Made by a program: the position numbers and the translations under genes. The notes under the pieces were generated by a model that made no database searches, was not told the DNA's origin, and saw only the letters and a list, made by a program, of their open reading frames with translations. This document shows positions 7,779-51,308 of a stretch of DNA of 64,000 nt, piece by piece. The DNA is taken from the IMG/VR virus record IMGVR_UViG_3300049855_000348, positions 62,001 to 126,000 of that record; one strand, 5' to 3'. Every line of letters begins with the position of its first letter. The first letter of the stretch is position 1.

Positions 7779-7892
7779 CCTCTACCTCAAAATGGTTTGG
7801 GTGTTGACAGCGCCAAAAGGGTCAATATGCTCCCGGCTCCAAGGGCTAAGACGGTTCCGTTTCACGGAGTAGTCGAGGCAAGCCCAGAGATC

Positions 7893-7921
7893 ACCCTCCA
7901 GCCACACCTGGAGGGTTTTTT
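7893..7921 (+). terminator. Intrinsic terminator
   Basis: CCCTCCAG-ccacac-CTGGAGGG followed by TTTTTT. Confidence 0.75.
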
Positions 7922-7934
7922 CGTTTATAAGTCC

Positions 7935-8537
7935 ATGAGCCCAGAATTAGTTGCAGAAGTGTTCACCCGCATCCATGACCAGAACCTCTGGGGCAGTCCT
8001 GAGAGCGTTTCTGGCGGTGGAAGTGCTCTGGAGGCCACCACCAAGATCCGCGCCGAGATCCCGGCCCTGATCGCCCAGCATGGCATCCTGAGCATGCTCG
8101 ACTTGCCCTGTGGAGACTTCAACTGGATGGGTGAGATGCTGAAGGTTCTGCCTGATCTGCGGTACACCGGTGGTGATGTGGTGGTTCCGCTCATCGAGAA
8201 GAACATCCGCAAGTACCCCACCATTCGCTTTGAGGTGTTGGATGTGATCTCGTCACCCCTGGCACAGCATGATCTGGTGTTCTGCCGTGACTGCTTGGTT
8301 CACCTGCCTGAGAAGCTGGTTCGCAAGGCCATCGAGAACATCAAGGAGAGCAACTGCCGCTTCCTCCTGGCGACCACGTTCCCCAAGGCCATCCCCCAGG
8401 ACATCGAAGTCGGACAGTGGCGTCCGCTCAACCTGATCCCCTTTCTGGGAGAGCCGATCCAGGTGATCAGTGAGTGCTTTGCTGACCTGGATGGCGTACC
8501 AACCGAGAAGCAACTCGGACTGTGGCGCTTCCGGTAA
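7935..8537 (+). CDS. Class I SAM-dependent methyltransferase
   Basis: WG..ES.SG.GS, MLDLPCGDFNW, Y.GGDVV and CRDCLVHL motifs. Confidence 0.85.
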   Translation: MSPELVAEVFTRIHDQNLWGSPESVSGGGSALEATTKIRAEIPALIAQHGILSMLDLPCGDFNWMGEMLKVLPDLRYTGGDVVVPLIEKNIRKYPTIRFEVLDVISSPLAQHDLVFCRDCLVHLPEKLVRKAIENIKESNCRFLLATTFPKAIPQDIEVGQWRPLNLIPFLGEPIQVISECFADLDGVPTEKQLGLWRFR

Positions 8538-9957: not shown

Positions 9958-10324
9958 GTCTCTTCCCGAGGACGAAGGAGTTGAAGATGGATTCGAGGCA
10001 CCCCTCGTAGAGTAAGGTCGGCAGTGGATTACGAAACTGAATGTAGCTCATGGCATGGCCCATGCTCTCCAGCGTCTTGGTCAACTGGTCCATGTTCTGC
10101 ATCCCTTTGAGACGACGCTCGAAGTCGAGGATATTCGAGTGCTCAGCCCATTCGGGCTGCATGATACCCATGCGGAGGGCACGCTCATTGGTGTCGGCTT
10201 TGTAACCGCAGTTCTGACCGTTCTCGTCGAACAGGATCGCACCAACGTTGCAGCACTCATCGTGTCTGACTTGGTCGACGATCTTGAGGATCGAGTAGTT
10301 GCCGTATTTGGCCTTCTCATTCAT
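9932..10324 (-). CDS. DUF3037-like protein
   Basis: YSILK.V.....E..NVG.IL N-terminal signature. Confidence 0.6.
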   Translation of the reverse strand: MNEKAKYGNYSILKIVDQVRHDECCNVGAILFDENGQNCGYKADTNERALRMGIMQPEWAEHSNILDFERRLKGMQNMDQLTKTLESMGHAMSYIQFRNPLPTLLYEGCLESIFNSFVLGKRREQSNSGL

Positions 10325-10698
10325 GGGAGTCTCCTTACTGGTCCGCCGACTACGCCACTAGGTAGGCGCTTTTTGCTGGCTGCAAGGAGTTCATCTGCGT
10401 CGGTGTACTCGACAGCATTCCTCTCGCCTGGGTTTCCACCTCCGAGATCTCCATCACCGACATCAACTGAGATCGTCTGACCAACCTCGTCTACCTCAAC
10501 CTTCCTGTTGTTCCGATCGAGGATGATCTGGGCGATGGTGGAAGCCTTGATGGTGATCTGACCAACAGTGCCGTCCTTCATCTGAACTTTGATTTCGATC
10601 TCATCCTCCTCGGTGACATTGGCGTGGACGATTCTCCTCCCGACGTTGAGATCATCATCCGGAAAGTCCGAGAGGAGAGGATTGATTCCCTTTGCCAT
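10321..10698 (-). CDS. Hypothetical protein with ISVDVGDGDL motif
   Basis: ATGA overlap with the downstream gene. Confidence 0.7.
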   Translation of the reverse strand: MAKGINPLLSDFPDDDLNVGRRIVHANVTEEDEIEIKVQMKDGTVGQITIKASTIAQIILDRNNRKVEVDEVGQTISVDVGDGDLGGGNPGERNAVEYTDADELLAASKKRLPSGVVGGPVRRLP

Positions 10699-10702
10699 CT
10701 GA

Positions 10703-11179
10703 TCACCGCTTCGCAGCGATCAGCATGCACTTGTAGAGATTCCAGAACGCTGACCACGGACGTTTCTCGGTCAGTTCGTTGACCTCGATGAAGTGAATTA
10801 GTTCGATGACACTCCCCACGGTATCACAGGGAAAGTGCTCTAATTTCACCGTGTCGATGCCACCGTCGAGAACTTGAATGTTGTTCTCTTGGCTGTCGAC
10901 GTGTTTGAGGATGTCGTTGAGCAACGCTTTATGATCGATGCCTTCACTGTCGGTGAATTCACGCTTGCGGTTCTCTTCCTGAGCCGTCAGTAGAAGTTTG
11001 CGTAGGTCTTCATGTGAGACCACTCGTTCATGAATGGTATCACTACCGGCATCGATCTTCTCAACGTAGGTGAATTTCTTATCACCCTTCACGTAGATGA
11101 GATCGCCGACGATATGTCTGGACTGATCACCGGGTTCCTGGACCCGTATCCGCATCGGTTCTGTTTTTGTCTTGGCCAT
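10703..11179 (-). CDS. Hypothetical protein with IQVLDGGI motif
   Basis: TAATG overlap with the upstream gene. Confidence 0.75.
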   Translation of the reverse strand: MAKTKTEPMRIRVQEPGDQSRHIVGDLIYVKGDKKFTYVEKIDAGSDTIHERVVSHEDLRKLLLTAQEENRKREFTDSEGIDHKALLNDILKHVDSQENNIQVLDGGIDTVKLEHFPCDTVGSVIELIHFIEVNELTEKRPWSAFWNLYKCMLIAAKR

Positions 11180-12327
11180 TACTGGCTCCCTCCCGTGAGC
11201 TTCTTCGTCCCGAATGAGGTTGCCAGCGACTTAGCAACCTCGGCTTCCTTGCCGGTGCCGGCTGCGAGCAAGACACGGATGGCAGCCGTCTCAGCGAGTT
11301 GACTGCCTTCCTCCATGGCTTGCTCGACCACGAAGGTAGTGTTGTTCTTCCGACGCTCAGCGACCAACTGGAGGCTCTTGATCAGTTCCTCCATGGCCTT
11401 CTTGCCGATCGGCTTGCCGACGTTCTCACTCAGACTCTTGATGATGGCGGTAAGATCCTTGTCTTGCTCGCTGATCGAATCGTTGAGCCGCTGACGCATC
11501 CGATCCAGGATCGAGTCAGGGTTGAAGACACGTTCACGCAGGGCCACCGCGTTCTCGTCGATCATCCAGTAGTGATCCAGCGTGCAGGGGACCGATGAGC
11601 GACCAATGAGGAAGCTGGCGAACTGCTCAGGAGACAGAGCGATGCGGGCGATGGTCCGACCATCAGGGTTGTGGACCTCGATCGTCACATAGTGCTGGTG
11701 CTCGGACATGCTGCCGTTGAGATACCGCTGACCCGAGGTGATGGTCAGGGAGATCGTAGATCTGGAGCGTTCGAGATCTGACCAGTTGTTGTAGTCGTGC
11801 AGACCGTGCTGGGTGGACTGTTCGGCGTCGGTCCCCTCGTGCTTCTTGTGGCCATGCACATCAGCGCCCTTGCGAAGATTCTCAGCAGCGTCTTCGAGCT
11901 TCCGATGTGCCTGGATCAACTTGGCGAATGCCAGGATCTCTTCCTCAGAGATGGCCAGCATGCCCTTCGAGTTGCGGAAGCTGTAGTTCAGATTCAACTT
12001 CTCAGCCGCATTGATCCACGTACGGGCAGTGTGGTCAGAGACAGCGACGACACCCTGCTTCGGCAGGTAATTGATATCGTGGAGACCATCGGTCTTGAAT
12101 TGGACACGGTCGCAGTTGGCGTGCAGGTTGGAATCGACCGCCTCCGGTTTCACGTCAGTACGCTGTGCCTTGGCGACGACTGGACCTTCCAGGCCGATCT
12201 CATTTTCGATGTAGGAAACGGCGTCCAACAGTTCCTTCGGACCTTTGTACTCAACATTCCCAGCGAAGAGTGCCTTGGTGGACTTGGCCAGCGTCCGCAT
12301 GGCGATGATGAGCTTGTCGTTTTGCAT
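11179..12327 (-). CDS. Hypothetical protein, leaderless
   Basis: 382 aa; ATG 6 nt after promoter copy 4. Confidence 0.8.
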   Translation of the reverse strand: MQNDKLIIAMRTLAKSTKALFAGNVEYKGPKELLDAVSYIENEIGLEGPVVAKAQRTDVKPEAVDSNLHANCDRVQFKTDGLHDINYLPKQGVVAVSDHTARTWINAAEKLNLNYSFRNSKGMLAISEEEILAFAKLIQAHRKLEDAAENLRKGADVHGHKKHEGTDAEQSTQHGLHDYNNWSDLERSRSTISLTITSGQRYLNGSMSEHQHYVTIEVHNPDGRTIARIALSPEQFASFLIGRSSVPCTLDHYWMIDENAVALRERVFNPDSILDRMRQRLNDSISEQDKDLTAIIKSLSENVGKPIGKKAMEELIKSLQLVAERRKNNTTFVVEQAMEEGSQLAETAAIRVLLAAGTGKEAEVAKSLATSFGTKKLTGGSQ

Positions 12328-12333
12328 TGGATA

Positions 12334-12361
12334 CCCTTAGCGACCTTTTGGTCTAAGTCAA
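12334..12361 (-). promoter_or_regulatory. Repeated promoter, copy 4
   Basis: TTGACT-TAGACCAAAAGGTCGC-TAAGGG-TATCCA-ATG. Confidence 0.75.
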
Positions 12362-12362
12362 T

Positions 12363-12614
12363 TTATCTCTCTTGGACGACGATATCAACCGGCAGACTCC
12401 GATCGTTACGGAACGTCCGCTCGGTGGTCTTGAGGAGGATCACCAGACCCATCACGCCGAGGTCCTGGTTGTCGGGGTCGATCTGTTGAGTGGTATGCGG
12501 GATCTGATCACGTCCAACGAAGTAGGCGTGAGCGATCTCTGGAGCCTCGGCCAGAACTATCCCGATGATGTCACCGTGGTGATTCTTGGCGATGAAGATG
12601 AAGCGTTTGCGCAT
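12363..12614 (-). CDS. Hypothetical protein
   Basis: ORF in minus-strand run with an upstream AAGGA SD. Confidence 0.65.
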   Translation of the reverse strand: MRKRFIFIAKNHHGDIIGIVLAEAPEIAHAYFVGRDQIPHTTQQIDPDNQDLGVMGLVILLKTTERTFRNDRSLPVDIVVQER

Positions 12615-12784
12615 GCGAGTTCCTTGCGTTCTTGAAGCACGGTGTCAATGAAGGCACCGAGGCGCTTCACCGCTTTGAGATCAGTCTCACCAACACAGGA
12701 CAAGATTGGTCTGCCTGTACGGTCTCGAACGACCACTCGACAGTTGGAGACGGAGACCTTCAGGAAGAGATCGGGAATGGTCAT
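12557..12784 (-). CDS. Hypothetical protein
   Basis: ATGA overlap with the 12781 gene. Confidence 0.55.
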   Translation of the reverse strand: MTIPDLFLKVSVSNCRVVVRDRTGRPILSCVGETDLKAVKRLGAFIDTVLQERKELACANASSSSPRITTVTSSG

Positions 12785-23094: not shown

Positions 23095-23122
23095 AATATA
23101 GCGACCATTTAGTCTAAGTCAA
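23095..23122 (-). promoter_or_regulatory. Repeated promoter, copy 8
   Basis: TTGACT-TAGACTAAATGGTCGC-TATATT-GTTGGC-ATG. Confidence 0.85.
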
Positions 23123-23461: not shown

Positions 23462-23837
23462 TGGTGGACGCGCCCGGAATCGAACCGGGGTCCAAGAGAT
23501 CTTCTTTCTGTGTGCTCTACCAAGAATATGAGGTGTTTCTGTCCTCCAACCTAGTTGGTCTTTTCTCGATGACCTACACTCGTCTGCGTTGTTCTTTCGT
23601 GCCTTACCCGCAGCGGGAAAGCCCTAGCGTCCGGCCTATGGTACCAGGGTGCGACCGGCGACGGCCCTGGGGTTGTTGGTGCAGCGTCTAGCTGCCTGAT
23701 TGCTCAGGCGGCGAGTGCGATGCGACCGTACTCGACGTGATCGTCGGGTATTTTTTTACGGGTTTTTTAGGTGGACTCCCGCACCACCTCTTGGCTCACC
23801 CTGATGTCTGTTCTCCTGTCGAGACCTGTTCGCGCCC
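23462..23837 (-). ncRNA. ssrA: tmRNA (one-piece), tag (A)DDHVEYGRIALAA
   Basis: Acceptor stem GGGCGCG/CGCGTCC with G3-U70 and encoded ACCA; T-arm CCCGG-TTCGATT-CCGGG; pk1 AGGTGG/CCACCT plus TGCGGG/CCCGTA; tag ORF at 23704-23745. Confidence 0.95.
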
Positions 23838-24200: not shown

Positions 24201-24228
24201 TTTATAGCGACCATTTGGTCTATGTCAA
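24201..24228 (-). promoter_or_regulatory. Repeated promoter, copy 9 (drives the ncRNA cluster)
   Basis: TTGACA-TAGACCAAATGGTCGC-TATAAA. Confidence 0.85.
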
Positions 24229-25988
24229 ACAATTTGTGGAACGCCGGCTTCTGCGAGTCGTGATTTTCCGATCGTCCTGACCTTGATGCCCAGTGTACCG
24301 AGAAACGGCATCAGGTGACGGTAGTTGCGCACGATCTTCGGGAAGTTCTGGTCGATCTCTGAAACCTTGGTCTCTTTGTAGAATCGTGGCTGCTGTGGTG
24401 AGTAGTCATGACCACAACCAGCGAGCAGGATGTCCTTGGCTCCAGCCCACACAGCGACCTGAATGGCCACCCAGACGATCGAGTAACCATGGAAGATGCC
24501 ACGGGTGAGGTCGGAGCAGAAACCCTCATGGCCGATGGTCTTGATGTACGAAGCATCGCAGTTGCCAGGAAGGAATGGACGAACCACCGAGTTGTAGATC
24601 TTCAGACCACACGCCTTGATGGCGATCTCTTTCTTCTCTGGAACATCGAGGAAACGCTTGTCGCCGATGCAATACACATCGAACGGGATACCGAGTTTCA
24701 TCGCAGCGTTGGTGCCGATGTTCTTGGCGTTTGGGTAGAGTCCAACCGCTTCAAGTGCTGTTGGTCCATTTCCCCAGATCACCACCTGCTGATCTTTCCA
24801 TTGCCCGAACAGTTCAAGCACGGCGGGCTGGATCTTCTCCGGCACGAGGTACGGAGAGGCGAGACGCTGGAAACCTCCCCACTGACGGAAATAGGTTTTC
24901 TCTTTCACTGGTGGAGTGATGGGACTCTGACCGGTGGTGACTTGCTCATAAACATCGGTGAAGTGTCTGACCAGTCGATTGGGATTCCAGTTGTTCTCCA
25001 TCCACGAACGACCGTCAATTTTCAACTTCTCCACCAGATCTGGATTGGCGGCGAGATTGCGCAGTGTGGCTTCGAGTTCGTGCTGCTGCGTGTTCACCCA
25101 TGGCAGGGTGGTGTCGTATCCAACGATCTGACGGATGGCATCCTTCGTCTGATCATCAATCCAGCCGATGGTGACCAGACCCTGGCTGAGAGCTTCCAAC
25201 GAACAGAGATGGTAGCCACCAGTGACGCACTCGTCGATGCAGACATCGTGCTGTTGTTTGATGGGCATCAACTCTTCCCAACGCTTGTCGGTGATGAGTG
25301 TGTACTCGATGAGCCCTTCGGCCTGCAATTTCTTCAGGACAGCGTTGACGGTGGAATAGCCCTTGCCGCAGCAGGTGTTGGTGTAGATGGCGTAGGACTT
25401 CAGATCGCTTGGTGTGTAGATGACCTTCAGTTTGCTGTGCTTCGCCAGCATCGGCATCAGGCGTGTGTCGTAGATGTCGATCATGTTCGGAACTGGCGTG
25501 CTCTTGGGATAGAAGCGAACATGCTTCTGAGCGATGACCAGCGTGCGAATGTCATCACGATTCACCACATCACGCTTATAAGCCTTCTGGAGGAGTGATG
25601 GTTCGGTGTGGTACTGGAGGACTTTGTATTTCTCCCGCAGCAAGTGCTTGAACGGAGCCATCTCAGGCGATTCGTGATCCACCCAGTTGTGAAAGTGAAT
25701 CACATCAGCCTTGCTGATGAGGTGCTTCACTTCGTGGACTTGATGCAGGAAGACATCGTGCTGAAACTTCCGACCGTTGGTGGTGTCACTGGCGGTGACC
25801 GTCCGGCAGGTGTGTGACGTGTACTTGTTGATGGCGTCATGGATGCGCCAGATCGCCCCGGCACAGTTGGTCCGAGAGATCTGAAGGATCAGTTTTCCTT
25901 CCGCCTTGTTGATTGCCGGGGCGGCGTTCTGCAACTCGGGAAAGGATGAGTTATCCATCGGGATCAGTTCGACTGGGTAGTTGGTCAT
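24225..25988 (-). CDS. Two-domain glycosyltransferase (GT-B-like plus DUF115/MAF-like domain)
   Basis: KGY and GYHLCSLEALSQG (GT-B); C-terminal IWGNGP..IGTN..AIQVAVWAGAKDILLAGC. Confidence 0.75.
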   Translation of the reverse strand: MTNYPVELIPMDNSSFPELQNAAPAINKAEGKLILQISRTNCAGAIWRIHDAINKYTSHTCRTVTASDTTNGRKFQHDVFLHQVHEVKHLISKADVIHFHNWVDHESPEMAPFKHLLREKYKVLQYHTEPSLLQKAYKRDVVNRDDIRTLVIAQKHVRFYPKSTPVPNMIDIYDTRLMPMLAKHSKLKVIYTPSDLKSYAIYTNTCCGKGYSTVNAVLKKLQAEGLIEYTLITDKRWEELMPIKQQHDVCIDECVTGGYHLCSLEALSQGLVTIGWIDDQTKDAIRQIVGYDTTLPWVNTQQHELEATLRNLAANPDLVEKLKIDGRSWMENNWNPNRLVRHFTDVYEQVTTGQSPITPPVKEKTYFRQWGGFQRLASPYLVPEKIQPAVLELFGQWKDQQVVIWGNGPTALEAVGLYPNAKNIGTNAAMKLGIPFDVYCIGDKRFLDVPEKKEIAIKACGLKIYNSVVRPFLPGNCDASYIKTIGHEGFCSDLTRGIFHGYSIVWVAIQVAVWAGAKDILLAGCGHDYSPQQPRFYKETKVSEIDQNFPKIVRNYRHLMPFLGTLGIKVRTIGKSRLAEAGVPQIV

Positions 25989-26018
25989 GGATGAGTGCTG
26001 GTCTTCTACTTATGAGCG

Positions 26019-26690
26019 ATGACCACACTCCGATCCGCCAAAGAACTCTGGTCCGACGCCCAGCCCGCCCGGCCTTGTTTGATCATGGGGAACTCCCCCA
26101 GCCTGGATCTCTACAAGGACGAGACCTACGACCAGTTCTTCACCATCGGCTGCAATTCCCGCCTGCACACCCGGTACACTCCCGATCTGACCATGATGAT
26201 CGACCGGAACATACCAACACCCGATCCTGAGGCTGATCTGGTCTCACAGATCCCCCATTGGCAACAGAGTCATCCAGGGACGGTCTACAAGTTCCAACTC
26301 GGCCTGCGACTCCAGTTCCACCCCGATCTGAGTTCTGACAAGATCGACTATTCGATCACCAGTCCGTACATGGCCATCTGCCTCGCCTATCTTATGGGAT
26401 GGCGCAGCTTCACTCTCATCGGGATCGACCTGGGCATGGTCGACGGGAAGAACTACCATGACGACAAGGAGAAAGCTCCCATCGTCACCCGTCCTGGCTT
26501 CGTGCTCGGACCCGATGGCAAGGAGATCCCCGACCCCCTCAACACTCGGCGTCGCTTCCTCGCTGCGTGCTACAATCACCTCAGCTACCTCATCAACAAG
26601 ATGAGCACGTACCACAACTGCCGTTTCTTCTCGCTCTCGCCCTACTCGCAGTTGCTTCAAAACGGTAACGTCAAGAAAGTCACGCTGTGA
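26019..26690 (+). CDS. DUF115/MAF-like (sialyltransferase-like) putative glycosyltransferase
   Basis: CLIMGNSPSL, TIGCN, AICLAYLMG..FTLIGIDL. Confidence 0.7.
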   Translation: MTTLRSAKELWSDAQPARPCLIMGNSPSLDLYKDETYDQFFTIGCNSRLHTRYTPDLTMMIDRNIPTPDPEADLVSQIPHWQQSHPGTVYKFQLGLRLQFHPDLSSDKIDYSITSPYMAICLAYLMGWRSFTLIGIDLGMVDGKNYHDDKEKAPIVTRPGFVLGPDGKEIPDPLNTRRRFLAACYNHLSYLINKMSTYHNCRFFSLSPYSQLLQNGNVKKVTL

Positions 26691-27544
26691 ACGACGCCGA
26701 CAAGTTGAAAGACGAGTACCACTCGAAGCTCGCAGACAACCAGACCTACTGGTTGAAGATCCGCTTCACGCCCGGCATGGAGATGCTGGCCAAAGAGCTT
26801 GCCACCGGTCGCCGGATCTATGAGCAGGATTTCGTCGATCCGAATACCTCACCAAGAACGGTCATCATCTCACCGGATGGCAGTGAACTCAGCCCAAGTA
26901 TTTCGCCGAGTCCGCCACCTCCATCACCGGCATCCTCACCATCACCAATACCAGCCTCGCCACATCCGGTCATCACTCGTCGTCGCAGCCAACGCTGGAT
27001 GATCGATGCTACCGGCAGCTTTCCCACGCTTTTCATCGAAGAATCGAAGGTGAGCTTCTATTCGACGCTCGCTGAACTGAAGCAGGGTATTTCCGATCGT
27101 TCCGACACCGGTCGCAACAAGGTGGTGATCAACATCGCCAACGTCATCTCGGTCGAGAAGATCATCACCCGTCGCAGCTACTCGCAGAGCATCGTCTACC
27201 CCGATGTCGAAGCAGGCATCAATGGTCAGGAACCGAAGATCGTTGAAGAACCACTGACGATCGACTCACCGCAAGAGATCCCAGCGATCACCGACATCAA
27301 CCAAGAGATGATGTTCAAGATCCTGGCCCATGGTGGTCAGGCTCCGTACCGCTATTCGATGATCAACGCGCCCACCGACCTCTACGTCACCGAGGACGGC
27401 TGGGTTCGTGGCTTCATCGAAGAGGACCAGTGGCCGACCTCCGACTTCCGTGAGTTCGTGGTTCTCATCCTGGTCGAAGACTCCTCCATCCCAGTCCAGA
27501 CTGCCGGCCTGGAGTTCCGCTACCGGCTCTACCCACGCTCATGA
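26687..27544 (+). CDS. Protein with Ser/Pro-rich linker and C-terminal Ig-like domain
   Basis: A.GG.APY.YS..AP..L.V..DG pattern; SPSISPSPPPPSPASSPSP linker. Confidence 0.65.
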   Translation: MNDADKLKDEYHSKLADNQTYWLKIRFTPGMEMLAKELATGRRIYEQDFVDPNTSPRTVIISPDGSELSPSISPSPPPPSPASSPSPIPASPHPVITRRRSQRWMIDATGSFPTLFIEESKVSFYSTLAELKQGISDRSDTGRNKVVINIANVISVEKIITRRSYSQSIVYPDVEAGINGQEPKIVEEPLTIDSPQEIPAITDINQEMMFKILAHGGQAPYRYSMINAPTDLYVTEDGWVRGFIEEDQWPTSDFREFVVLILVEDSSIPVQTAGLEFRYRLYPRS

Positions 27545-28119
27545 TGCACCAACCCACCAAGGTTTCCAAGCAGACCATCGGCTCGGTCCTGGAGGACATC
27601 AAACGCCAGCAGAAGCGGCTGGAGGATGCCTTCAACTGGACCAGCACGGTGGCCAAGGCCATCCAGACTGCCGGTCGCCGGGTGGTGTTCACCAACGTTG
27701 GACCGATCGAGCCAACCACCCGGGAGGTCGGGATCGCCTTTTCCCTGGTCGTAAACGGGGTCATGCAGGACGTTCTAGTCGTCACCCTGGTCGTTACCCC
27801 TTCCAAGGACGATCTTGCCTCCATGAGGCGGGAAACCGCCCTGGCGATGGAGGGAATTCGCCTGGAGACCATGCTGGCGTGGCAGGAGCAGGGGGTGCGG
27901 GTGTTCGAGACGTGGTTCGTCAAGGAACAGACCCTGTGGCAGGGCTCGCCGGAGAAGACCCAGGTCTATCTTACTAAGGTCATAGCAGATTGGCTGGCCT
28001 ACTGGTTCGAGACGCCACCTTCGCCGATCTTCCGGGCACCCGAACTCCGCATCCGGTCGATCAGCCCGAAGGCACCGCTCGCCACACCGCTTCCTGTTGC
28101 TTCACCGATGGGCGGTTAG
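27541..28119 (+). CDS. Hypothetical protein
   Basis: ATGA overlap with the upstream gene. Confidence 0.7.
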   Translation: MMHQPTKVSKQTIGSVLEDIKRQQKRLEDAFNWTSTVAKAIQTAGRRVVFTNVGPIEPTTREVGIAFSLVVNGVMQDVLVVTLVVTPSKDDLASMRRETALAMEGIRLETMLAWQEQGVRVFETWFVKEQTLWQGSPEKTQVYLTKVIADWLAYWFETPPSPIFRAPELRIRSISPKAPLATPLPVASPMGG

Positions 28120-29413
28120 TCGCTCCGTAGGTGTACGGGATCTTCTTCATGCCCGGCCATGGCTGGAGGTTGCTCAAGAAGCGTTTGAACTCGTAGGTGT
28201 CGCCACCGTAGGTGAGCACCGATCCGAAGGGCATGAAGTGGACCGAGTAGTATTCGCCGGTGGCGTGATCATTGATCTCGCTGTCGACCAACGTCATCAG
28301 ATTGCGATGCGGACGATTGACCGTCAGCGAGATACCCAGGGCTTGCTCACCCTCTGAGGTGATGGCACTGGGATGCAGGCCGAAGTTCGTGCCGTACTCC
28401 GTCGGCGTTCCCTCGACTCGTGACAGACGCTGATTGTAGGTCAGGCCAGCGGGCAGGATCAGGTCATCAGGATCGAAGCTCGGGTAAACGCTGTCGCACT
28501 GTTCTTGGTTGTCACAGACGTTCGAGCATTCGAGCGAGCACAGGTAAGGAACACCCACCACGCCGTGCGGCATCTTCACCACGGCACCCGGTGGGTATCC
28601 ATCCTGCACGACGATATTGCGCACGAACACCTGACCAGATGCATCTTTGATGGCGATCGACAGTGCGGTCGGCTGGCTGGCAGTGACCGACAAGGTCATG
28701 TAATAGCCGCCGATTCCATCGGCATAGACGGTAACCGTCGCCACTCCACCGACATCGCTGCCTGAGGGATTGTACGAGTCGATGCCCTGCTCGGCATCAT
28801 AGGCGATCACTGCACCAACGTTGCCAATGATCGGCAGGTTGACGATGCAGTTCTCGTTGAGCATTGGGATGATGTCGAAGTCACAGTCGAACTGCAACGG
28901 CACCAGATGCTTCATCAACAAATTCTGATCGACGTGGCGAAGGTCCTGCCAGTAACGAGAGATGAACACCAGGAAGCCGGTGCTCATGTCATCCGTGGTG
29001 GCCGAAGCGAGGTCGATTGGACGCGGGAAGTTCGCTGGCGGCTCATCGAGGAAGAGCAGACGACCAGAAGGATCACGAATCCCTTCCGACAGACGAGCCC
29101 GGCAGATGTTGCGATCTGGCTCAGCATGGAAGCCGAAGGTGATGCCAGCCGACTCCTGGTTGACCTGGGCAGCCATATCGGTGGTCAGCCGCTTGCAGAG
29201 TGCGCTGGTGAAGATCGCCTTCGAGAAGGTGGGTGTCTCCAGGTTCAGGCCAGACTTCCGACCCGCTGAAGGGATGTGAATGATCTGTGGCTGGATGGCA
29301 GCGCAGTTCTCTGGCGAGTCATAGTTTGCACCGTCCACCGTGGCAGCCAGATAGGGCGTCCTGAGGAAGCCTCCGCCAATCGAGAACAGGTGAACTTTTT
29401 CGTCAAACTGCAT
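28061..29413 (-). CDS. Putative virion protein with putative Ig domain
   Basis: GVVGVPY...LPAGLTYN...EGTPT. Confidence 0.65.
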   Translation of the reverse strand: MQFDEKVHLFSIGGGFLRTPYLAATVDGANYDSPENCAAIQPQIIHIPSAGRKSGLNLETPTFSKAIFTSALCKRLTTDMAAQVNQESAGITFGFHAEPDRNICRARLSEGIRDPSGRLLFLDEPPANFPRPIDLASATTDDMSTGFLVFISRYWQDLRHVDQNLLMKHLVPLQFDCDFDIIPMLNENCIVNLPIIGNVGAVIAYDAEQGIDSYNPSGSDVGGVATVTVYADGIGGYYMTLSVTASQPTALSIAIKDASGQVFVRNIVVQDGYPPGAVVKMPHGVVGVPYLCSLECSNVCDNQEQCDSVYPSFDPDDLILPAGLTYNQRLSRVEGTPTEYGTNFGLHPSAITSEGEQALGISLTVNRPHRNLMTLVDSEINDHATGEYYSVHFMPFGSVLTYGGDTYEFKRFLSNLQPWPGMKKIPYTYGATNRPSVKQQEAVWRAVPSG

Positions 29414-29447
29414 GACCTAGTTAGCCTGTTTTCCCTGTAGTTAGATC

Positions 29448-30209
29448 ATGCCACAAACACTCGCTACGCTGCGGTATCTCTCCTTCGAGGTCGGTTCCAA
29501 GTGCAATCTCGCTGACGATCACCCGACCTGCCCGATCAACCACATGAACCGGGTCTACGAGAAGACCATCCAGCCGGCTGACGTGTTGGCCTTCGTCCGC
29601 TCGGCTGTCGACCACGGCTTCCGTGGGTTCGTCGCCTTCCACTACTACAACGAGCCGATGCTCAAGATCATCGACGTGTTGACCATCATGGACCTCATCG
29701 ACGAGGCCAAGCTGCCGGTGCAGTACCTGCTGTGGTCGAACGGTCTGCTGATCCCGAGGAGCCCGGACAAGCAACAGTTCCTCAAACGCTTTCACGACAT
29801 CATCATCTCGCAGTATTTCGCCAAGGACGTTCCCTTCTTCGTCGAACTCCAGAAACGCTTCCCCCACATCCGCATCATTCCCAACGCTCAGTTGGACGAC
29901 CGTGCCGCTGTGGTCGAGAAGCCGGCCACCTCCTACACCGACTTCGGTCAGTGCATGCGCCAGAAGATCGAGATGATCATTCGCAACGATGGTGAGATCC
30001 ACCACTGCTGCATCGACTACGGTAACGAGATCAAGGCCGGCAACGTCCTGCGTGACGACCATGCTGCCGTCATTGCTCGCTGGCAGAAGAACCGCGACAT
30101 CGTCGGTGCCGGCGACATGAACCAAGAAGGGTTCAACGCTCTCCCCTCCGTCTGCAAAGCCTGCGTCGTCAAGACGCCTCACTCCGTGATCATGCCCAAG
30201 AGGACCTGA
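29448..30209 (+). CDS. Radical SAM / SPASM-domain-like protein with atypical Cys motif
   Basis: SFEVGSKCNLADDHPTCP, YNEP, SNG; SPASM-like C..IRNDG.IH.CC.D...GN..W..C..C. Confidence 0.75.
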   Translation: MPQTLATLRYLSFEVGSKCNLADDHPTCPINHMNRVYEKTIQPADVLAFVRSAVDHGFRGFVAFHYYNEPMLKIIDVLTIMDLIDEAKLPVQYLLWSNGLLIPRSPDKQQFLKRFHDIIISQYFAKDVPFFVELQKRFPHIRIIPNAQLDDRAAVVEKPATSYTDFGQCMRQKIEMIIRNDGEIHHCCIDYGNEIKAGNVLRDDHAAVIARWQKNRDIVGAGDMNQEGFNALPSVCKACVVKTPHSVIMPKRT

Positions 30210-30901
30210 TGCGTCTCGACTCCGTTCTGTACGTCAACCTTCCTGAATCGATCTATCGCCGTGATTGCGTTGAATCAGAGATCCACAAAGTTGGTCTCTT
30301 CGACATCGCACACCATCACGAAGGCATCCGACCGGAAGCTAGTCTCCCGTTGCCACGTGGTTTCTCTCCCGAGCTTCTAGGCAGCCTCTATGGTGATCAG
30401 CAGGCACGTGGTGCTCTGGGTTGTGCGTTGGCTCACTACAACGCCTACAAGCGCATCCAATACAACGGCTGGCAGAACACGCTGATCCTCGAAGATGATG
30501 CAGTGATCGACGTGGCTCATTTCAAGACCCTGCTCGACAACGCACCAGCCGATGCCGACATCATCTACCTCAATCGTTCACAGTGGCCGGTGGCGGTCAT
30601 CGACGACACTCAGAACAGTGATTTCTTCGAGCGTGTGAAGGGACAACTCTGCACCGTCGGCTACATCGTCAGGCAGTCAGCGATCGAACGACTCATCGAA
30701 CGTTGTGATCCGTTCGCTCCGCGTCCGAATCCCGTTCATATCAGTGTCATCGACGTGGTACTGGCCAATGAGATGACCGACCTGAAGATCTTCCGTCCAT
30801 TGCATGGAGCGGTCGATCAGGATCTCACCAAGTTCGGCTCCATCATCGCTGGGGTGCCGGCTGTGGAGTATCAGAAGAAGAAGGAACTGGGATCGGTGTA
30901 G
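30209..30901 (+). CDS. Glycosyltransferase family 25
   Basis: YVNL....RR, GALGCALAH, LILEDDA, GYIV. Confidence 0.9.
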   Translation: MRLDSVLYVNLPESIYRRDCVESEIHKVGLFDIAHHHEGIRPEASLPLPRGFSPELLGSLYGDQQARGALGCALAHYNAYKRIQYNGWQNTLILEDDAVIDVAHFKTLLDNAPADADIIYLNRSQWPVAVIDDTQNSDFFERVKGQLCTVGYIVRQSAIERLIERCDPFAPRPNPVHISVIDVVLANEMTDLKIFRPLHGAVDQDLTKFGSIIAGVPAVEYQKKKELGSV

Positions 30902-31617: not shown

Positions 31618-31645
31618 AGTATAGCGATCAATTTGTCTAAGTCAA
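31618..31645 (-). promoter_or_regulatory. Repeated promoter, copy 10
   Basis: TTGACT-TAGACAAATTGATCGC-TATACT-TCGGGC-ATG. Confidence 0.85.
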
Positions 31646-35850: not shown

Positions 35851-36075
35851 CTAGCCCGGACCCCTCGGTGGATTCCTGGATCCGGTGGAGCCCTTTTCCC
35901 TGGCTTCCTTCATCCGCTTCGCCCGTTCGGTCATCAGATTGATCCAGTTCTTACGCTGGATGTTGGTCATGTTCATGACCTCCCAGCGTGCCAGACCACC
36001 GTCAGCCGTCATTGTGAAGACCTGATTGTCCAGGGCTTTACGAGTGTCCCAGTTCTCGGTTGGGCTCAGATTAGG
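35851..36075 (-). CDS. +1-frame extension of the gp26-like gene (gp51 / tail chaperone GT-like)
   Basis: 75-codon open +1 frame starting at CCC-TAA; encodes VF.M..GG..WEVMNM..QRKNW. Confidence 0.6.
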   Translation of the reverse strand, partial: PNLSPTENWDTRKALDNQVFTMTADGGLARWEVMNMTNIQRKNWINLMTERAKRMKEAREKGSTGSRNPPRGPG

Positions 36076-36901
36076 GACGAAAAAACGACTCCGTGATGGC
36101 GATGTTCACATCTTCCATCGAACCAGTCTCGGCGTTCTCGACTTCGATACGCACCTTCGGACCCGGGTTCTTGTCCATCAGTTCGGCACGGATGGCATGG
36201 GCCGTCTTGGCAATCATGCGATCGACAGCTTTGCGGACAGTGTCCGGGTTGCTGTCACCGTTGATGCTGACGATCTGACGACGCAGGGCCGAGGTGGGCG
36301 AGGAGTCGGGAGCCTTGGGGTTCTTCTTCTTCTCGTTCATCCGTTCGATCACGGCGTCTTGTTCATCCTTGCCGCGACTGAAGCGCAGTTCGTAGGTCAC
36401 GCCATCGTACTGGAATGGCCAGGGTTCCTGGAAGCCCTCGGGCAGCTTGTTGATCGTGAGCTTGCTCACGTCGGTCTTGATCTCCTGCTCGGTGCCGTCA
36501 CGCATGCGGGCACGGAAGCTGTACTCGGGGCCATAGCTGATGGCACGCAGGTAGAACAGCAGGTGCAGGCGATCTCCACTGAGGAGATCCATGGTGTTGA
36601 TGCCCTTGGTCATGATGCAGCGACTCAGCAGCATATCGATGGCGATACCCTGCTTGTGGAAACGCTCAGTGACCAGGATCTCTTCCTCCTTGGTTGTCAT
36701 CGGACGCACCAGCACGTAGCCGGCACGGGCGGGTGACTTCGCATCGTAGAGGGAGCCACCGCTGGGCAGGTCGACACGCTCTCCGGTGAACTCGGTATCC
36801 TGGCCAGTGGTGCCGATGCTGGCCTGGGCAAAGACGGCGTCGTTGGAGATCACCTTCTTGGGTGCGATCGGAGCTTTGGAGGGATCGTTTTCGGTGGGCA
36901 T
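36071..36901 (-). CDS. T4 gp26-like baseplate hub / tail assembly chaperone
   Basis: LPSGG.LY, VRPMTTKEEEIL, LL.GDR..LLFYLRAISYG..Y; ends FFRP. Confidence 0.85.
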   Translation of the reverse strand: MPTENDPSKAPIAPKKVISNDAVFAQASIGTTGQDTEFTGERVDLPSGGSLYDAKSPARAGYVLVRPMTTKEEEILVTERFHKQGIAIDMLLSRCIMTKGINTMDLLSGDRLHLLFYLRAISYGPEYSFRARMRDGTEQEIKTDVSKLTINKLPEGFQEPWPFQYDGVTYELRFSRGKDEQDAVIERMNEKKKNPKAPDSSPTSALRRQIVSINGDSNPDTVRKAVDRMIAKTAHAIRAELMDKNPGPKVRIEVENAETGSMEDVNIAITESFFRP

Positions 36902-41486: not shown

Positions 41487-44024
41487 TCAGACAACGCCGA
41501 CGGCGGCGAGGGCTTCGGTGAAGTTCGCACCCTGAGCGGTGATGACGAAGCTCAGGATGATCTTCTCGGCTGCCTTGGTCGGTTCGACCACGATGTAGCC
41601 GTAGACCTCGTTGTTGTCACGAGCGGCACTGCTCGTGGTCTGAGCGTCAATCTTCACCAGGAAGTTGTTCAAGCCACGCTTGTTCTTCACTTCCTGGTAG
41701 ATCGGGGTCAGGATCTTCACCAAGCTGGCCCAGAGGACAGCGTCGTTCGGATCGAAGAGTTCCGGACGAACGGCGGCGACCGAGGTGCGCTTGATGTAGT
41801 TCAACATGCGACGCACGTTGACACGATCGAGAGCCGAAGCGGCACGCTGGAGAGTGCGCTGACCGAAGATGACCACGCCATCCTTGGGGAAGTTCACGAT
41901 CGGGTTGACGGCGTTGCCGTTCGAGTACATGAAGTCGCGGTCACCCTGGTTGTTCACTGCATTGCCCTGGATGCCCAGAGCACGCACGAGGCGACCACGC
42001 TTGAAGCCAGCCGGAGCGAACCACACCTCACCGACGTTATCGGAGTAGGCGATCTGTTCGAGGACGCAGACGCTGGGCGGAACCCAGATCGTGCCACCGT
42101 TGAACAGGTCCTGGACCGGGAGCCAGCCGTAGTACAGAGCACCGAAGCTGGAGTTGAAGGCAGCGGAGTTGCCGAAGCCACGACCGTTGTGCCAGTCAAC
42201 CACATCCTGCGGAGACAGACCCTTGGTGACATCGCTGCCCGAGGGCGGATCGACGATGTAGATCAGATCGCCGGCACCTTCACAGATCGACAGACCAGCA
42301 CGGACGACAGCAGCCTGATCGAAACCAGGAGCAGCCAGAATGCTGTTGTCGTAGGTCTCGCGGTTGGCGTAGCCGTAGAGGCCGGAGTTGTCAGCAGGGT
42401 TGCCGATGACTGCATCGACGAGGTCGTTGTAGTCTTCCGGGATGCCGCTCTCACCACCGGTGAAGGCAGCGTCCTGCGAGGTGTAGAACTCGTAGGCGTT
42501 CCAGGTCAGGAAGGACTTGGCTGCGACATCGCTGATCACGTCGATACCACCCAACGCCGTTGTCAGCGAGGTCGAATCGCTGAGCAGGGTGATGTCTGCG
42601 GCAGCGAGCGGCGAGATGCCGCTGAAGCCTTCGAGTGCATCGATGAAGCTGCCGCTGACACCAGACGGCTGGATGCGCAGGTTGACAGCCTTCTCGCCGA
42701 GTTCGTTCGTCTCACGGTACTCGACGGTCATGAGACCCGAGTCATCGTGGCCGAAGTACATCTTGGCGCTGTTGGCGTACTCACCAGGGCTCGAAGCCTT
42801 GAAGTGCAGCTTGAGCGAGTTGGTGTAGTCGAGGCGCTTGGTACGGGTGCTCGACAGATTGATGGTGCCGATGCTTTCGTCGACCGGGTTGACGATCTCA
42901 CCCTGCGGCAGGTTGGTACCACCGTTGACCAGGGTGACAGTGCCGGCGTCGATGAGACCAGAACCGTCGCTGCCCGCACCGTTCGCAGCGGTGACGATCA
43001 GACGGGCCGTGGTGTTGGCAGCCAGAGCGGACAACACTTCAGCAGCCGTGGTGACGGTCTCGTTGATGTTGACCGTGACTTCACGACCAGAAACGCTGAC
43101 TGGTGGCAGACCGGTGAAGGTGTTGCCGACATCGACGAAGGTGACCGAGATGCCATTGCCGGCGATGCCGGGCTTCTTGGCCGTCAACTGAAGCTGGCTG
43201 TACGGCGTTCCACCATCGTAGGCGTTGGTGGCGTAGCCGGGCTCGTTCGGGCTGACCGACGAGGTGTCGTCAACGAGCTTGAACTCCAGGTTGAGAGCGA
43301 CGAGATCAGCGAGGTTCGCCGTCTTGATGGCGATGAACTTCTGCACGCCGTTCACATTGTCTTCGACCAGGATGTTCTCAGCACGCAGCGGAGCGTCGAC
43401 CATCAAGCGGTTGAAGCGGTTGGTGAACTGATCGTAGTTCTCGAAGGTCTTCGTGGCGGAAGCCATCGGCACGAGCACCTGCACGAACGCACCGGAGCCA
43501 GTGATGGCAGCGTTGAGTTCGTCGAGAGTGGTGATCGGAGCGAAGGCGGCGGTGAAGATGTTCGAGGCACCGAAGCGGCGGACCAGGGCATCGAAGGCAT
43601 CCGAGCCCAGGAACGAACCACTGCGCTTGAACACCTGGATGGCGAAGGCGAGTTGGCCACCATTGATGGTGATGCCGGAATCGTCCTTGGCGAGATACAG
43701 GACCTGCGAGTTGACGACGATGGGCGAGTCAGCACTGGCGAAGGCTTCCGTGCCGTCAGTGACGCGGGTGTACCAGACCTGCGAGGTCTTGGACAGCGCA
43801 TTCATCACGGCGTGCATGCCGAAGCGTGCTTTACTGGTGCCGATCGCCGGTGGCTTGCCGAAGATGTTCGCAGCATTGGACTGCGAGGTCAGCAGCGTGG
43901 GTACGCCGACCGGTCCCTTACTGGCCACGCCAACCAAGGCGAGGACGGTGCTGGCGATACGGGCAGCGTAAGCCGACACATCGACTTCATTGGCGTAGGC
44001 ACCAGGGCTGAGATAGGTCGTCAT
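41487..44024 (-). CDS. Tail sheath protein (T4 gp18-like)
   Basis: YLSPG.Y..E.D, KGP.G.P, WFAPAG.KRG, NPIV.F, GQRTLQ..SALDRVNVRR, F.PND. Confidence 0.96.
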   Translation of the reverse strand: MTTYLSPGAYANEVDVSAYAARIASTVLALVGVASKGPVGVPTLLTSQSNAANIFGKPPAIGTSKARFGMHAVMNALSKTSQVWYTRVTDGTEAFASADSPIVVNSQVLYLAKDDSGITINGGQLAFAIQVFKRSGSFLGSDAFDALVRRFGASNIFTAAFAPITTLDELNAAITGSGAFVQVLVPMASATKTFENYDQFTNRFNRLMVDAPLRAENILVEDNVNGVQKFIAIKTANLADLVALNLEFKLVDDTSSVSPNEPGYATNAYDGGTPYSQLQLTAKKPGIAGNGISVTFVDVGNTFTGLPPVSVSGREVTVNINETVTTAAEVLSALAANTTARLIVTAANGAGSDGSGLIDAGTVTLVNGGTNLPQGEIVNPVDESIGTINLSSTRTKRLDYTNSLKLHFKASSPGEYANSAKMYFGHDDSGLMTVEYRETNELGEKAVNLRIQPSGVSGSFIDALEGFSGISPLAAADITLLSDSTSLTTALGGIDVISDVAAKSFLTWNAYEFYTSQDAAFTGGESGIPEDYNDLVDAVIGNPADNSGLYGYANRETYDNSILAAPGFDQAAVVRAGLSICEGAGDLIYIVDPPSGSDVTKGLSPQDVVDWHNGRGFGNSAAFNSSFGALYYGWLPVQDLFNGGTIWVPPSVCVLEQIAYSDNVGEVWFAPAGFKRGRLVRALGIQGNAVNNQGDRDFMYSNGNAVNPIVNFPKDGVVIFGQRTLQRAASALDRVNVRRMLNYIKRTSVAAVRPELFDPNDAVLWASLVKILTPIYQEVKNKRGLNNFLVKIDAQTTSSAARDNNEVYGYIVVEPTKAAEKIILSFVITAQGANFTEALAAVGVV

Positions 44025-50519: not shown

Positions 50520-51308
50520 ATGACCACCGCGACTGAGACCAATTGCTCGACTTCATCCTGCTCACCAGAGCCGGTGATGAACACGTGCCTGACGCTCAGC
50601 ATCAAGCGGTACATCCTGACCGAGCTTGGCTACCCCAACGTCGAAGTCGAACTCTGCGATGAACACCTTGAGAATGCCATCAAGGACACCATCAGCGACT
50701 TCCTGCGTTTCAATGCCCTCAACCTGACCAAGTATTGGAAGATCACCCTTCAGAACGGTGTCAGCACCTACGATCTGCCATCAGACTTCCGTGTCCTGCG
50801 TGAGGTGGTGACCTTCAAGCTCAGCCAGTTCGATGTGATCTTCGGTGCCGACCTGATCATCAATCCGATCTATCTGCGCAATACCCGTGATGCCTATCAG
50901 GATATCCTGACCTTCTGGCTCAGTGAAGCCGCCTTCGAGACCCAGAAGCGCACCTACGGCCTCAACACGTCCTGGGACATCATCGAAGGCAACAAGAAGA
51001 TCTGCCTGCGTCCATGCCCGTCCTCTGATCGTGTGGCCATCCTCAAAGGCAGCTACCAGCCAGAACCCGGCACGGTTACCGAGCAGACGCTGGGCACCAA
51101 GGATGAACTCTTCCGTCGCATGGCTTTGGCTCGTGCCATGTCCATCCTTGGTCGTATTCGTGGCAAGCGTACCTCCGGCATCAACACCTCCCAAGGTGTG
51201 GTCATGCTCGACGGCCCTGAGCTTCGTGCTGAGGGAGAGAAGATGCTGACCGAAGCTCGGGAAGAACTCAAGAACACCGGTCGTCCTCTTGGCTTCTACG
51301 CGGGGTGA
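50520..51308 (+). CDS. Neck protein (T4 gp13-like)
   Basis: YIL..LGYP.VEVEL.DE....AI; ALA.A..ILGRIRGK; LDG.EL..EG. Confidence 0.85.
   Translation: MTTATETNCSTSSCSPEPVMNTCLTLSIKRYILTELGYPNVEVELCDEHLENAIKDTISDFLRFNALNLTKYWKITLQNGVSTYDLPSDFRVLREVVTFKLSQFDVIFGADLIINPIYLRNTRDAYQDILTFWLSEAAFETQKRTYGLNTSWDIIEGNKKICLRPCPSSDRVAILKGSYQPEPGTVTEQTLGTKDELFRRMALARAMSILGRIRGKRTSGINTSQGVVMLDGPELRAEGEKMLTEAREELKNTGRPLGFYAG

Follow-up and report, generated by a model that had tools for sequence, protein, structure and literature searches.

What do the sugar-transferring enzymes encoded by a large uncultured phage modify? We addressed this question for a gene cluster at positions 24225–30901 of a 64,000-nucleotide stretch of DNA, hereafter the window, which covers bases 62001–126000 of a 220,489-bp IMG/VR virus contig (record IMGVR_UViG_3300049855_000348; GC content 56%). 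An earlier reading of the letters, the original prediction, had proposed here one late glycosylation cluster interleaved with immunoglobulin (Ig)-like proteins and possibly directed at the virion. Our in silico analysis firmly establishes the cluster as enzymatic. As to its target, our preferred answer, held tentatively and drawn from comparison between genomes, is that the region glycosylates proteins of the phage particle, of tail type or adhesin type. All seven open reading frames (ORFs) of the cluster are backed as genes by codon-position GC (GC3 around 0.7–0.84, GC2 around 0.35–0.44), genetic code 11 being used throughout. Together with two short spacers, they are arranged as follows (aa, amino acids; PWM, position weight matrix; AF2, AlphaFold2; SAM, S-adenosylmethionine):

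24225–25988, minus strand: bifunctional glycosyltransferase (GT) of 587 aa, assigned with AF2, Foldseek, VIA, Pfam and profiles.
25989–26018: divergent spacer of 30 bp between the 587- and 223-aa genes (sequence read, PWM scan).
26019–26690, plus strand: stand-alone GT42/MptE-like domain of 223 aa (PDB profile, hhalign, tblastn).
26687–27544, plus strand: 285-aa partner, whose start overlaps the stop of the 223-aa gene; candidate acceptor or adaptor.
27541–28119, plus strand: conserved 192-aa protein, translationally coupled to the 285-aa gene.
28061–29413, minus strand: 450-aa protein with a He_PIG/cadherin-like Ig domain around residues 300–350; candidate acceptor.
29414–29447: divergent spacer of 34 bp with two TAGTTAG-type boxes (PWM scan).
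29448–30209, plus strand: BtrN-like twitch/SPASM iron–sulfur (Fe–S) protein of 253 aa (Pfam SPASM, BtrN alignment), called radical SAM (rSAM)-like below.
30209–30901, plus strand: GT25 protein of 230 aa and GT-A type, whose start overlaps the stop of the rSAM-like gene.

In the 587-aa protein, the original prediction had seen a fusion of a GT-B enzyme with a DUF115/MAF-like domain, and this architecture was borne out. The AF2 model, built from a 38-sequence alignment, reaches a predicted local distance difference test score (pLDDT) of 90.8. Its residues ~29–355 form a GT4-like GT-B fold, with two Rossmann-like domains and a cleft between them. The best VIA-align matches are T4 alpha-glucosyltransferase (Z 22.6), BshA (22.3) and PimA (20.8), with 280–297 residues aligned in the range Z 22.6–19; GtfA (18.0), WaaG (16.8) and WaaB (16.7) follow lower down. 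Foldseek likewise returned PimA (8e-10), and GlgM and BshA in the 1e-9 to 1e-8 range. As the top VIA rows are tied, the GT-B fold does not name the acceptor. No Pfam GT signature was found on the 587-aa protein, and only 1–2 of its 38 relatives match one weakly. Invariant among the homologues of the 587-aa protein are K209-G210, D252-E253 and E265; the two glutamates stand 11 residues apart, versus 7 in EX7E-type enzymes.

The C-terminal domain (residues ~365–587, encoded at 24228–24896) is most probably of the MptE-like/DUF115 family PF01973, which is matched by 37 of the 38 homologues (best 7.8e-15). It carries the motifs GNGP(T/S) at 406–410 and GCGHDY at 524–529, and a seven-sequence profile of the domain matches the GT42 sialyltransferase Cst-II (3.6e-4) precisely at GNGPS and G-x-D-x-Y. 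The NCBIfam model WaaZ_KDO_III (TIGR04437) aligns with residues 487–559 (1.2e-4), at 21.5 bits compared to an equivalog cut-off of 200 bits, which does not make the domain a member of that family. An ESM Atlas model of the domain has a template modelling (TM) score of 0.82–0.84 to MptE-like/WaaZ clusters. The whole-model structure searches cover the GT-B domain, and the fold of the C-terminal domain is taken from profiles and the Atlas model. A search of the PDB with the single 587-aa sequence gave no match, and domain profiles were required. The Atlas also holds several stand-alone MptE-like clusters of 200–245 aa that are 82–97% viral; a transferase-type domain of this kind seems widespread in uncultured tailed phages, without an assigned function. 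A pterin-kinase identity of the MptE-like domains was ruled out by the GT42 motifs and the GT fusions.

The 223-aa gene is a second member of the same superfamily, as the original prediction had it. Its profile matches the CMP-N-acetylneuraminate (CMP-Neu5Ac) lipooligosaccharide (LOS) alpha-2,3-sialyltransferase 9c08 (4.7e-6), then Cst-II (2.5e-4) and Cst-I (5.5e-4), and weakly the flagellin glycosyltransferase Maf (5mu5; 0.13). Profile–profile comparison with hhalign between the 223-aa protein and the C-terminal domain of the 587-aa protein gives a probability of 97.3% (E 1.9e-11), which makes the two paralogous; GNGPS and G-x-D-x-Y align to Cst-II in both. Among 5.8 billion proteins, we found 73 homologues of the 587-aa protein, and many of these are 800–900 aa long. 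In the bacterial homologues, tblastn places a 223-like domain at the N-terminus, giving the order [GT42-like]-[GT-B]-[GT42-like]. The bacterial enzyme is one polypeptide and the phage has two divergent genes; therefore, the phage form represents a fission of the gene accompanied by inversion. By analogy with the bacterial fusion, the 587- and 223-aa proteins may form a heterodimer.

Relatives of the phage show which genes travel together. In a 191-kb relative (L001), gene order is conserved from an AAA_5 gene through the baseplate to a 1366-aa protein, and homologues of the 587-, 223-, 285-, 192- and 450-aa genes are present at 52–83% identity. No rSAM-like or GT25 homologue was found in the 21.9 kb read around its GT gene. 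The block formed by the 587-type gene and, divergent from it, the 223- and 285-type genes, with or without the 192-type gene, recurs in L006, L039, L040 and L041: the 223- and 285-type genes are present in all of these and in L001, and the 192-type gene in L001, L039 and L041. In L006, a 137-kb relative, the GT (10001–12730) has 909 aa and an extra partial N-terminal copy of the GT-B domain (29% identity to residues 70–274), and the 223-type gene stays separate. The 450-aa family has 21 homologous clusters. For nine of them, the longest contig has exactly the same length in bp as one carrying a GT homologue (34590, 29190, 10049, 39391, 12389, 191330, 22611, 103233 and 11137), which would place both genes on the same contig. 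Judged by these distributions, the cluster is not the single unit of the original prediction; its enzymes stand, and they fall into two modules, a conserved one (24225–29413) and a movable cassette with a different distribution (29448–30901). A tblastn search of phages with the 587-aa protein gave one match, to an unannotated 484-kb metagenomic phage, and a scan of IMG/VR gave two distant loci only.

The non-enzymatic genes of the conserved module encode the candidate acceptors. The 285-aa protein consists of a small N-terminal domain, a disordered Ser/Pro tract (~55–95), a middle domain and a C-terminal beta-sandwich (~190–285). It contains the 30-residue stretch richest in Ser, Thr and Pro of the whole genome (73%), followed by the 1366-aa protein (60%), the 739-aa protein (57%) and, encoded outside the window, a protein of 440 aa (57%). 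This agrees with the Ser/Pro and Thr-rich tracts that had been pointed out as possible acceptors. The Ser/Pro tract of the 285-aa protein is kept in relatives despite its varying sequence. Ig-like proteins had also been predicted, and both candidates fit this description. The beta-sandwich of the 285-aa protein (pLDDT 74–87) has weak Foldseek matches, with a best E of 0.016 at a probability of ~0.99, all of them to Ig, cadherin, PKD, intimin or phage-capsid BIG2 domains. In the family of the 450-aa protein, 5 of 18 members match He_PIG (best 1.4e-5) and two, the longer ones, match the lectin-like domain Laminin_G_3; the family profile matches SraP, a serine-rich adhesin, in its cadherin-like domains (2.7e-6). 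The 450-aa protein is thus predicted to be adhesin- or fibre-like. For the 192-aa protein, searches of Pfam and PHROG gave no match, and no family is recognisable.

Bacterial homologues of the GT were looked for in 185,579 species genomes. The scan gave 12 loci, all 12 from diderm lineages: Scalindua, Acidobacteria, Gammaproteobacteria, Aliiglaciecola, Oleispira, Paracoccaceae/Rhodobacteraceae, Mameliella, a deltaproteobacterium, Phycisphaerae, Longimicrobium and an alphaproteobacterium. Directly upstream of the GT, six of them encode a large protein with an eCIS_core domain, named after the extracellular contractile injection systems (eCIS); the effector genes of these systems are described here through their Pfam matches. 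Over all bacterial loci, about 13 in number, an eCIS-type effector gene immediately precedes the GT in at least six, and three of the operons could be followed to the sheath gene. In Aliiglaciecola, the upstream genes encode a CarboxypepD_reg protein, a contractile injection system tape measure (4e-100), an AAA ATPase and a protein combining eCIS_core with Endonuclease_NS_2. In Mameliella, a Paracoccaceae metagenome-assembled genome (MAG) and Aliiglaciecola, the GT lies 25–28 kb downstream of a sheath gene, on the same contig and strand, where it closes an eCIS-type operon. In Scalindua, the GT follows four large proteins, one with DUF6519, near GT25, GT11 and Peptidase_S74 genes; in Oleispira, a gene with a tail-collar domain precedes it. 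Sheath homologues were also found within 10 kb of the GT in two metagenomic or viral loci, L004 and L044. A literature search returned no paper on eCIS glycosylation.

In the phage itself, the cluster lies ~5 kb from a block of baseplate and sheath genes. The structural genes of the window are the following:

36071–36901, minus strand: T4_baseplate gene (8.4e-13).
41487–44024, minus strand: tail sheath gene (Phage_sheath_1C, 2.9e-10).
50520–51308: head–tail adaptor gene.

The phage is a contractile-tailed jumbo myophage, apparently with leaderless mRNAs. Its best sheath relative in the phage collection, that of Bacillus phage SP-15, is merely 38% identical. A blastn search with the cluster region against the 50,697 phage records gave no match, and 7 of 8 proteins remained without a match in PHROGs. 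Genome-wide, we found a strong early promoter consensus, GTGTTGACTTAGAC-N5-GGTCGCTATACT, in which many genes have their ATG 6–7 nt past the -10 box; the mRNAs therefore appear to be leaderless. Shine-Dalgarno sequences are lacking. Early promoters flank the cluster on both sides, at 23122 and 31645; examples in the window are those at 31624–31645, 15062 and 55620, all on the minus strand.

The original prediction had placed the cluster genes behind a putative late motif, and this part found little support. The late-type box CTAGATAA has 15 exact copies in the genome and sits 3–4 nt before the ATG of large genes, which are probably structural or late genes; it also stands 32 nt ahead of the sheath gene. 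The exact box is absent in front of the cluster genes. In a scan of these genes with a PWM based on the 15 sites, a fair variant, TGTAGTTAGATC-ATG, at the canonical 10-nt distance appeared solely in front of the rSAM-like gene (PWM 4.25, corrected p ~0.01). The two TAGTTAG-type boxes of the spacer at 29414–29447 each stop 3–4 nt ahead of the ATG of their gene and are loose versions of CTAGATAA. The spacer at 25989–26018 lacks a Shine-Dalgarno sequence, and neither an early nor a late box can be recognised in it. With leaderless starts and spacers that measure just 30 and 34 bp, the promoter of either gene must extend into the first codons of the other.

The movable cassette begins with the 253-aa Fe–S protein, which had been called a radical SAM/SPASM enzyme. 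The SPASM/twitch half of this assignment stands: PF13186 is matched at 24.1 bits (cut-off 21.5 bits), and the protein aligns end to end (residues 11–240) with BtrN (E 0.003), sharing YGEP/YNEP and TNG motifs. The auxiliary-cluster cysteines C169, C187, C236 and C239 align with C169, C187, C232 and C235 of BtrN. The radical SAM half does not stand in its canonical form. The CX3CX2C motif is replaced by C19-x5-H25-x2-C28-P, in which the middle cysteine of BtrN is missing, and PF04055, the radical SAM family, has no match at E up to 0.1 across the whole genome. An exhaustive HMMER search gave 425 representative clusters, of which 243 at E up to 1e-10, so that the family comprises at least 243 clusters at 50% identity. 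E14, C19, H25, C28, P29, C169 and C187 are invariant in 150 of 150 aligned sequences, and C188 is nearly always present. Of ten long members examined, six carry GT2 or Glyco_transf_7C, one of them together with a sulfotransferase; in the locus L054, a tandem pair of the family lies beside a polyketide synthase (PKS) and a natural-product glycosyltransferase of EryCIII/UDPGT type. NCBIfam has no model for the C-x5-H-x2-C-P family, and a literature search found no paper naming the CX5HX2C motif. On its motif and alignments, this twitch/SPASM family is an uncharacterised branch of radical-SAM-like enzymes, and the 253-aa protein is probably a sugar-modifying enzyme of dehydrogenase type.

The second gene of the cassette is a GT25, as predicted: PF01755 is matched at 42.2 bits (cut-off 24 bits; 1.1e-10), and it belongs to phrog_2835. 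The solved structure nearest to it is that of the catalytic domain of human procollagen galactosyltransferase 1 (COLGALT1; 3.7e-5), whose VFEDD aligns with ILEDD in the phage protein (EDD ~95–97). Searches with the rSAM-like and GT25 proteins by tblastn in the 50,697 phage records gave no match, and repeats flanking the cassette were short matches of chance size only.

Two methyltransferases had been associated with virion-type genes in the original prediction, and one of them can be linked to the cassette:

61589–62167, minus strand: class I SAM methyltransferase of 192 aa (Methyltransf_11, 1.2e-14), adjoining a 3994-aa ORF.

In one relative (L010), the rSAM-like gene, the GT25 gene and a methyltransferase gene are contiguous in this order, and the L010 methyltransferase is 47% identical to that of the window; this synteny, seen in one relative, therefore links the gene at 61589 to the cassette. 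The enzyme is of small-molecule type, with UbiG-like best matches. The other methyltransferase, at 7797–8537, is below the Pfam cut-off and nothing links it to the cluster. The adjoining ORF, from 62178 of the window onward (genome 124178–136162, minus strand), is rich in Thr (15%), Ala (14%), Gly (13%) and Ser (10%). The encoded protein is fibre-like and another candidate acceptor of glycans or methyl groups.

Which sugars could be transferred depends on the host. In the complete genome, Pfam gives no match for CTP_transf_3 (the family of synthetases of CMP-Kdo, the activated form of 3-deoxy-D-manno-oct-2-ulosonic acid, and of CMP-nonulosonates), NeuB, NAD-dependent epimerase, GT2 or GT1; therefore, any glycan must use activated sugars made by the host. 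The host of the phage is probably a diderm bacterium. CMP-Kdo is universal in diderm bacteria, and by analogy it would be the obvious donor candidate for the WaaZ-like domains. For donors, acceptors, order of steps and timing, we infer the following scheme. In the cytoplasm of the infected cell, the GT-B domain would prime Ser or Thr residues of particle proteins with a hexose or N-acetylhexosamine (HexNAc) from a host UDP-sugar. The likeliest acceptors would be the Ig-like proteins of 285 and/or 450 aa, or else proteins of the tail, baseplate or fibres. Next, both GT42/WaaZ-like domains would attach ulosonic acid residues taken from a CMP-sugar of the host, most obviously CMP-Kdo if the host is diderm. 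Where the cassette is present, the GT25 would attach a beta-hexose, the Fe–S enzyme would oxidise or otherwise change a sugar hydroxyl and the methyltransferase would O-methylate a sugar. The virion would thereby acquire a glycan coat on its proteins of tail type or adhesin type.

Our preference for particle proteins as the target has several grounds. It is favoured because the Ig/cadherin-like and Ser/Pro-rich partners are conserved together with the enzymes, because the cluster lies near tail genes, because the fused enzyme repeatedly stands at the end of eCIS operons and because Maf, the flagellin nonulosonate transferase, provides a precedent: the same fold can glycosylate protein in the cytoplasm. 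It is also supported because the Fe–S family is repeatedly fused or adjacent to glycosyltransferases, and because COLGALT1, the closest solved relative of the GT25, glycosylates protein. The proposal of virion glycosylation has thus gained comparative support from co-conserved partners, distance to tail genes and eCIS operons, and it stays conjectural. Several observations weigh against it. The phage is uncultured, and both the glycosylation of particles and the structural role of the 285-, 192- and 450-aa partners are read from sequence. The GT4-like GT-B, WaaZ-like and GT25 families are all typical of the lipopolysaccharide (LPS) core, and the C-terminal domain is closer to WaaZ than to the protein-modifying Maf. 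With the MptE-like Pfam model, the 587-aa protein itself scores 19.6 bits and the 223-aa protein 18.7 bits, compared to a cut-off of 34.6 bits. An RNase T-type exonuclease gene and genes with early promoters stand between the cluster and the structural block, and the late-box PWM scores of the 587-, 223- and 450-aa genes are not above chance. Among the bacterial homologues, the one from Phycisphaerae (29% identical) lies in a polysaccharide locus with Wzt ABC-transporter and sulfotransferase genes, and in three genomes with homologues no sheath gene was detected.

Some of these points recur in the strongest alternative, which we consider unlikely but deserving of a real share of belief: that the enzymes remodel the envelope of the infected or eCIS-producing cell by altering lipid A-core, O-antigen or capsule intermediates. 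For example, extra Kdo and hexoses on the LPS core would mask receptors, and thereby prevent superinfection, keep progeny from being lost on debris or stop released particles from self-binding. All three GT families indeed have LPS-core members, WaaG and WaaB are among the GT-B matches, no named family is closer to the C-terminal domain than WaaZ_KDO_III and Pfam describes GT25 as a family of LPS biosynthesis. Distant homologues beside Wzt and sulfotransferase genes, and the diderm origin of all cellular homologues found, fit as well, and clusters of GT25 and radical SAM genes in cyanomyoviruses have been read by their authors as serving cell-surface modification (PMC12801897). However, such remodelling leaves the strict co-conservation of the Ig/cadherin-like, Ser/Pro-rich partners unexplained, the module contains no membrane segments or lipid-carrier enzymes, and masking pre-existing LPS would, on general grounds, be slow for a lytic cycle. 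It is far less probable that the contractile machine carries the enzyme as cargo or toxin and injects it to glycosylate molecules of the target cell. The position of the GT at the 3' end of the operon, directly after eCIS_core effector genes (one with Endonuclease_NS_2), would suit this idea. Yet a layout of three GT domains generally resembles glycan-assembly enzymes, unlike the known GT-A toxins; the phage enzyme is split in two divergent genes accompanied by conserved non-enzymatic partners, and the GT protein showed neither eCIS_core nor another loading domain.

About as improbable is a separate role of the second module, in which the Fe–S enzyme, the GT25 and the methyltransferase would make or tailor a small glycoside or an aminocyclitol-type metabolite. 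The substrate of BtrN is an aminocyclitol, the tandem pair of L054 lies beside PKS and EryCIII/UDPGT-type genes and the methyltransferase has UbiG-like best matches; but no scaffold or activated-sugar genes were found in the phage, and members of the family are fused mostly with GT2, GT7C and sulfotransferase domains, such as typically serve to assemble polysaccharides or glycoconjugates. Lowest of all we rank hypermodification of DNA, in which the GT-B domain, perhaps with the others, would glycosylate phage bases against restriction in the manner of T4. Bacillus phage SP-15, the source of the nearest sheath, is known for its hypermodified DNA, and it has GT-B proteins among the BFVD matches. 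The T4 alpha-glucosyltransferase shares the GT-B fold and is the top structural match, though tied with BshA (22.6 vs 22.3). Known glycosylated pyrimidines of phage DNA start from 5-hydroxymethylcytosine (hm5C), 5-hydroxymethyluracil (hm5U) or 5-hydroxycytosine (5hoC) made by thymidylate-synthase homologues (PMC13326640). In the complete genome, no thymidylate-synthase (PF00303) or hydroxymethylase homologue was found, and DNA glycosylation is therefore unlikely despite the T4 match. Unlike the T4 alpha- and beta-glucosyltransferases, the phage system has extra GT42-like domains, which, like the Ig-like partners, are without counterpart in systems that glycosylate DNA; its bacterial homologues lie in eCIS and polysaccharide loci and none in DNA-modification loci.

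Glycosylation of particle proteins, the reading we retain, can be compared to known systems. Virion glycosylation is described for the actinobacteriophages Che8, Corndog and Myrna (Freeman et al., 2023, as cited in PMC12619734). These phages likewise encode their own GTs, some with a methyltransferase, which are thought to act on virion proteins in the cytoplasm. The present system differs from what is reported there by its GT-B with two GT42/WaaZ-like domains, its GT25 and its Fe–S enzyme, and by its jumbo myophage setting. The acceptors named there are C-termini of capsid and tail-tube proteins, whereas the predicted candidates here are Ig-like accessory or tail proteins. GtfA/GtfB, which act on SraP-type adhesins, resemble the proposed phage system in that a cytoplasmic GT-B enzyme works on Ser-rich tracts, and GtfA and SraP appear among the matches (Z 18.0 and 2.7e-6, respectively). 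This is an analogy without orthology: there is no accessory Sec system, and the Ser/Pro tract is short here (~30–40 residues).

For the C-terminal domain, WaaZ (Kdo III transferase; TIGR04437/PF27901) is the nearest named family both by sequence and by predicted structure. WaaZ, however, is a single-domain enzyme of the LPS core, and the phage domain is not its orthologue (21.5 vs 200 bits). With the GT42 enzymes Cst-I and Cst-II and with Maf (DUF115; 5mu5), the domain shares the GNGPS nucleotide motif, G-x-D-x-Y and the MptE-like superfamily; it differs in that the E values are only 1e-4 to 1e-6 for GT42 and 0.13 for Maf, the alignments stop before His188 of Cst-II or are unreliable there, and no CMP-sugar pathway was found in the phage. 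WbbB unites Kdo transferase, GT1 and GT25 modules and acts on lipid-linked O-antigen. It thus also combines an ulosonic-acid transferase-type domain with GT-B chemistry in one protein, and here a GT25 lies nearby; the ulosonic-acid domain is a GT99 in WbbB and MptE-like in the phage. BtrN (2-deoxy-scyllo-inosamine dehydrogenase, PDB 4m7t) resembles the 253-aa protein in size (~250 aa), in its four auxiliary cysteines and over the whole alignment, whereas the phage protein has C-x5-H-x2-C in place of CX3CX2C and no PF04055 match. In the T4-like cyanophage S-SCSM2R, ORF303–306 bring GT25 and SPASM-type radical SAM genes together (PMC12801897). The neighbourhood of these two genes in a myophage is alike, but the proteins are not close relatives, since those of the window matched none of the 50,697 phage records by tblastn.

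A wider idea would join these observations, and we regard it as speculative and rather doubtful as a whole: contractile-tail nanomachines, both jumbo phages and eCIS, may share an undescribed three-domain GT that coats a fibre or adhesin with an LPS-core-like glycan containing ulosonic acid from host CMP-Kdo, and in some phages a new BtrN-like class, with His for the middle Cys, may tailor this glycan. To our knowledge, virion glycosylation has so far been demonstrated only for actinobacteriophages. Conserved in phages of probable diderm hosts, a module of the present kind would carry it over to another enzyme chemistry, that of ulosonic-acid transferase-type domains supplied with donors by the host. 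Because the eCIS-terminal GT also occurs in cultured bacteria, Mameliella and Aliiglaciecola, the matter is open to laboratory tests. It concerns the recognition of engineered injection systems and phages by hosts, grazers or immune systems, and the C-x5-H-x2-C-P family raises questions of cluster ligation and chemistry.

Further features of the genome were noted during this work. A tmRNA gene at 23462–23837 on the minus strand (Rfam RF00023, 97.4 bits, E 1.2e-37) occupies a seemingly gene-free gap, 388 nt away from where the 587-aa GT gene ends; its tag peptide according to ARAGORN is DDHVEYGRIALAA. About 31 tRNA genes, covering most amino acids, form two arrays at 18.5–23 kb (plus strand) and 39.9–40.8 kb (minus strand) of the genome. 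The 220,489-bp record has direct terminal repeats and is rated 100% complete by IMG/VR. Both genome ends (1–130 and 220361–220489) are made up of a 15-bp tandem repeat, TCAAGCTCAAGCTCG; IMG/VR scores this array as the direct terminal repeats, and it may be either a true terminal repeat or an assembly wrap-around within a repeat array. Close to the contig start, a 144-aa ORF (genome 193–354, plus strand) carries the best He_PIG (putative Ig) domain of the genome, at 34.2 bits.

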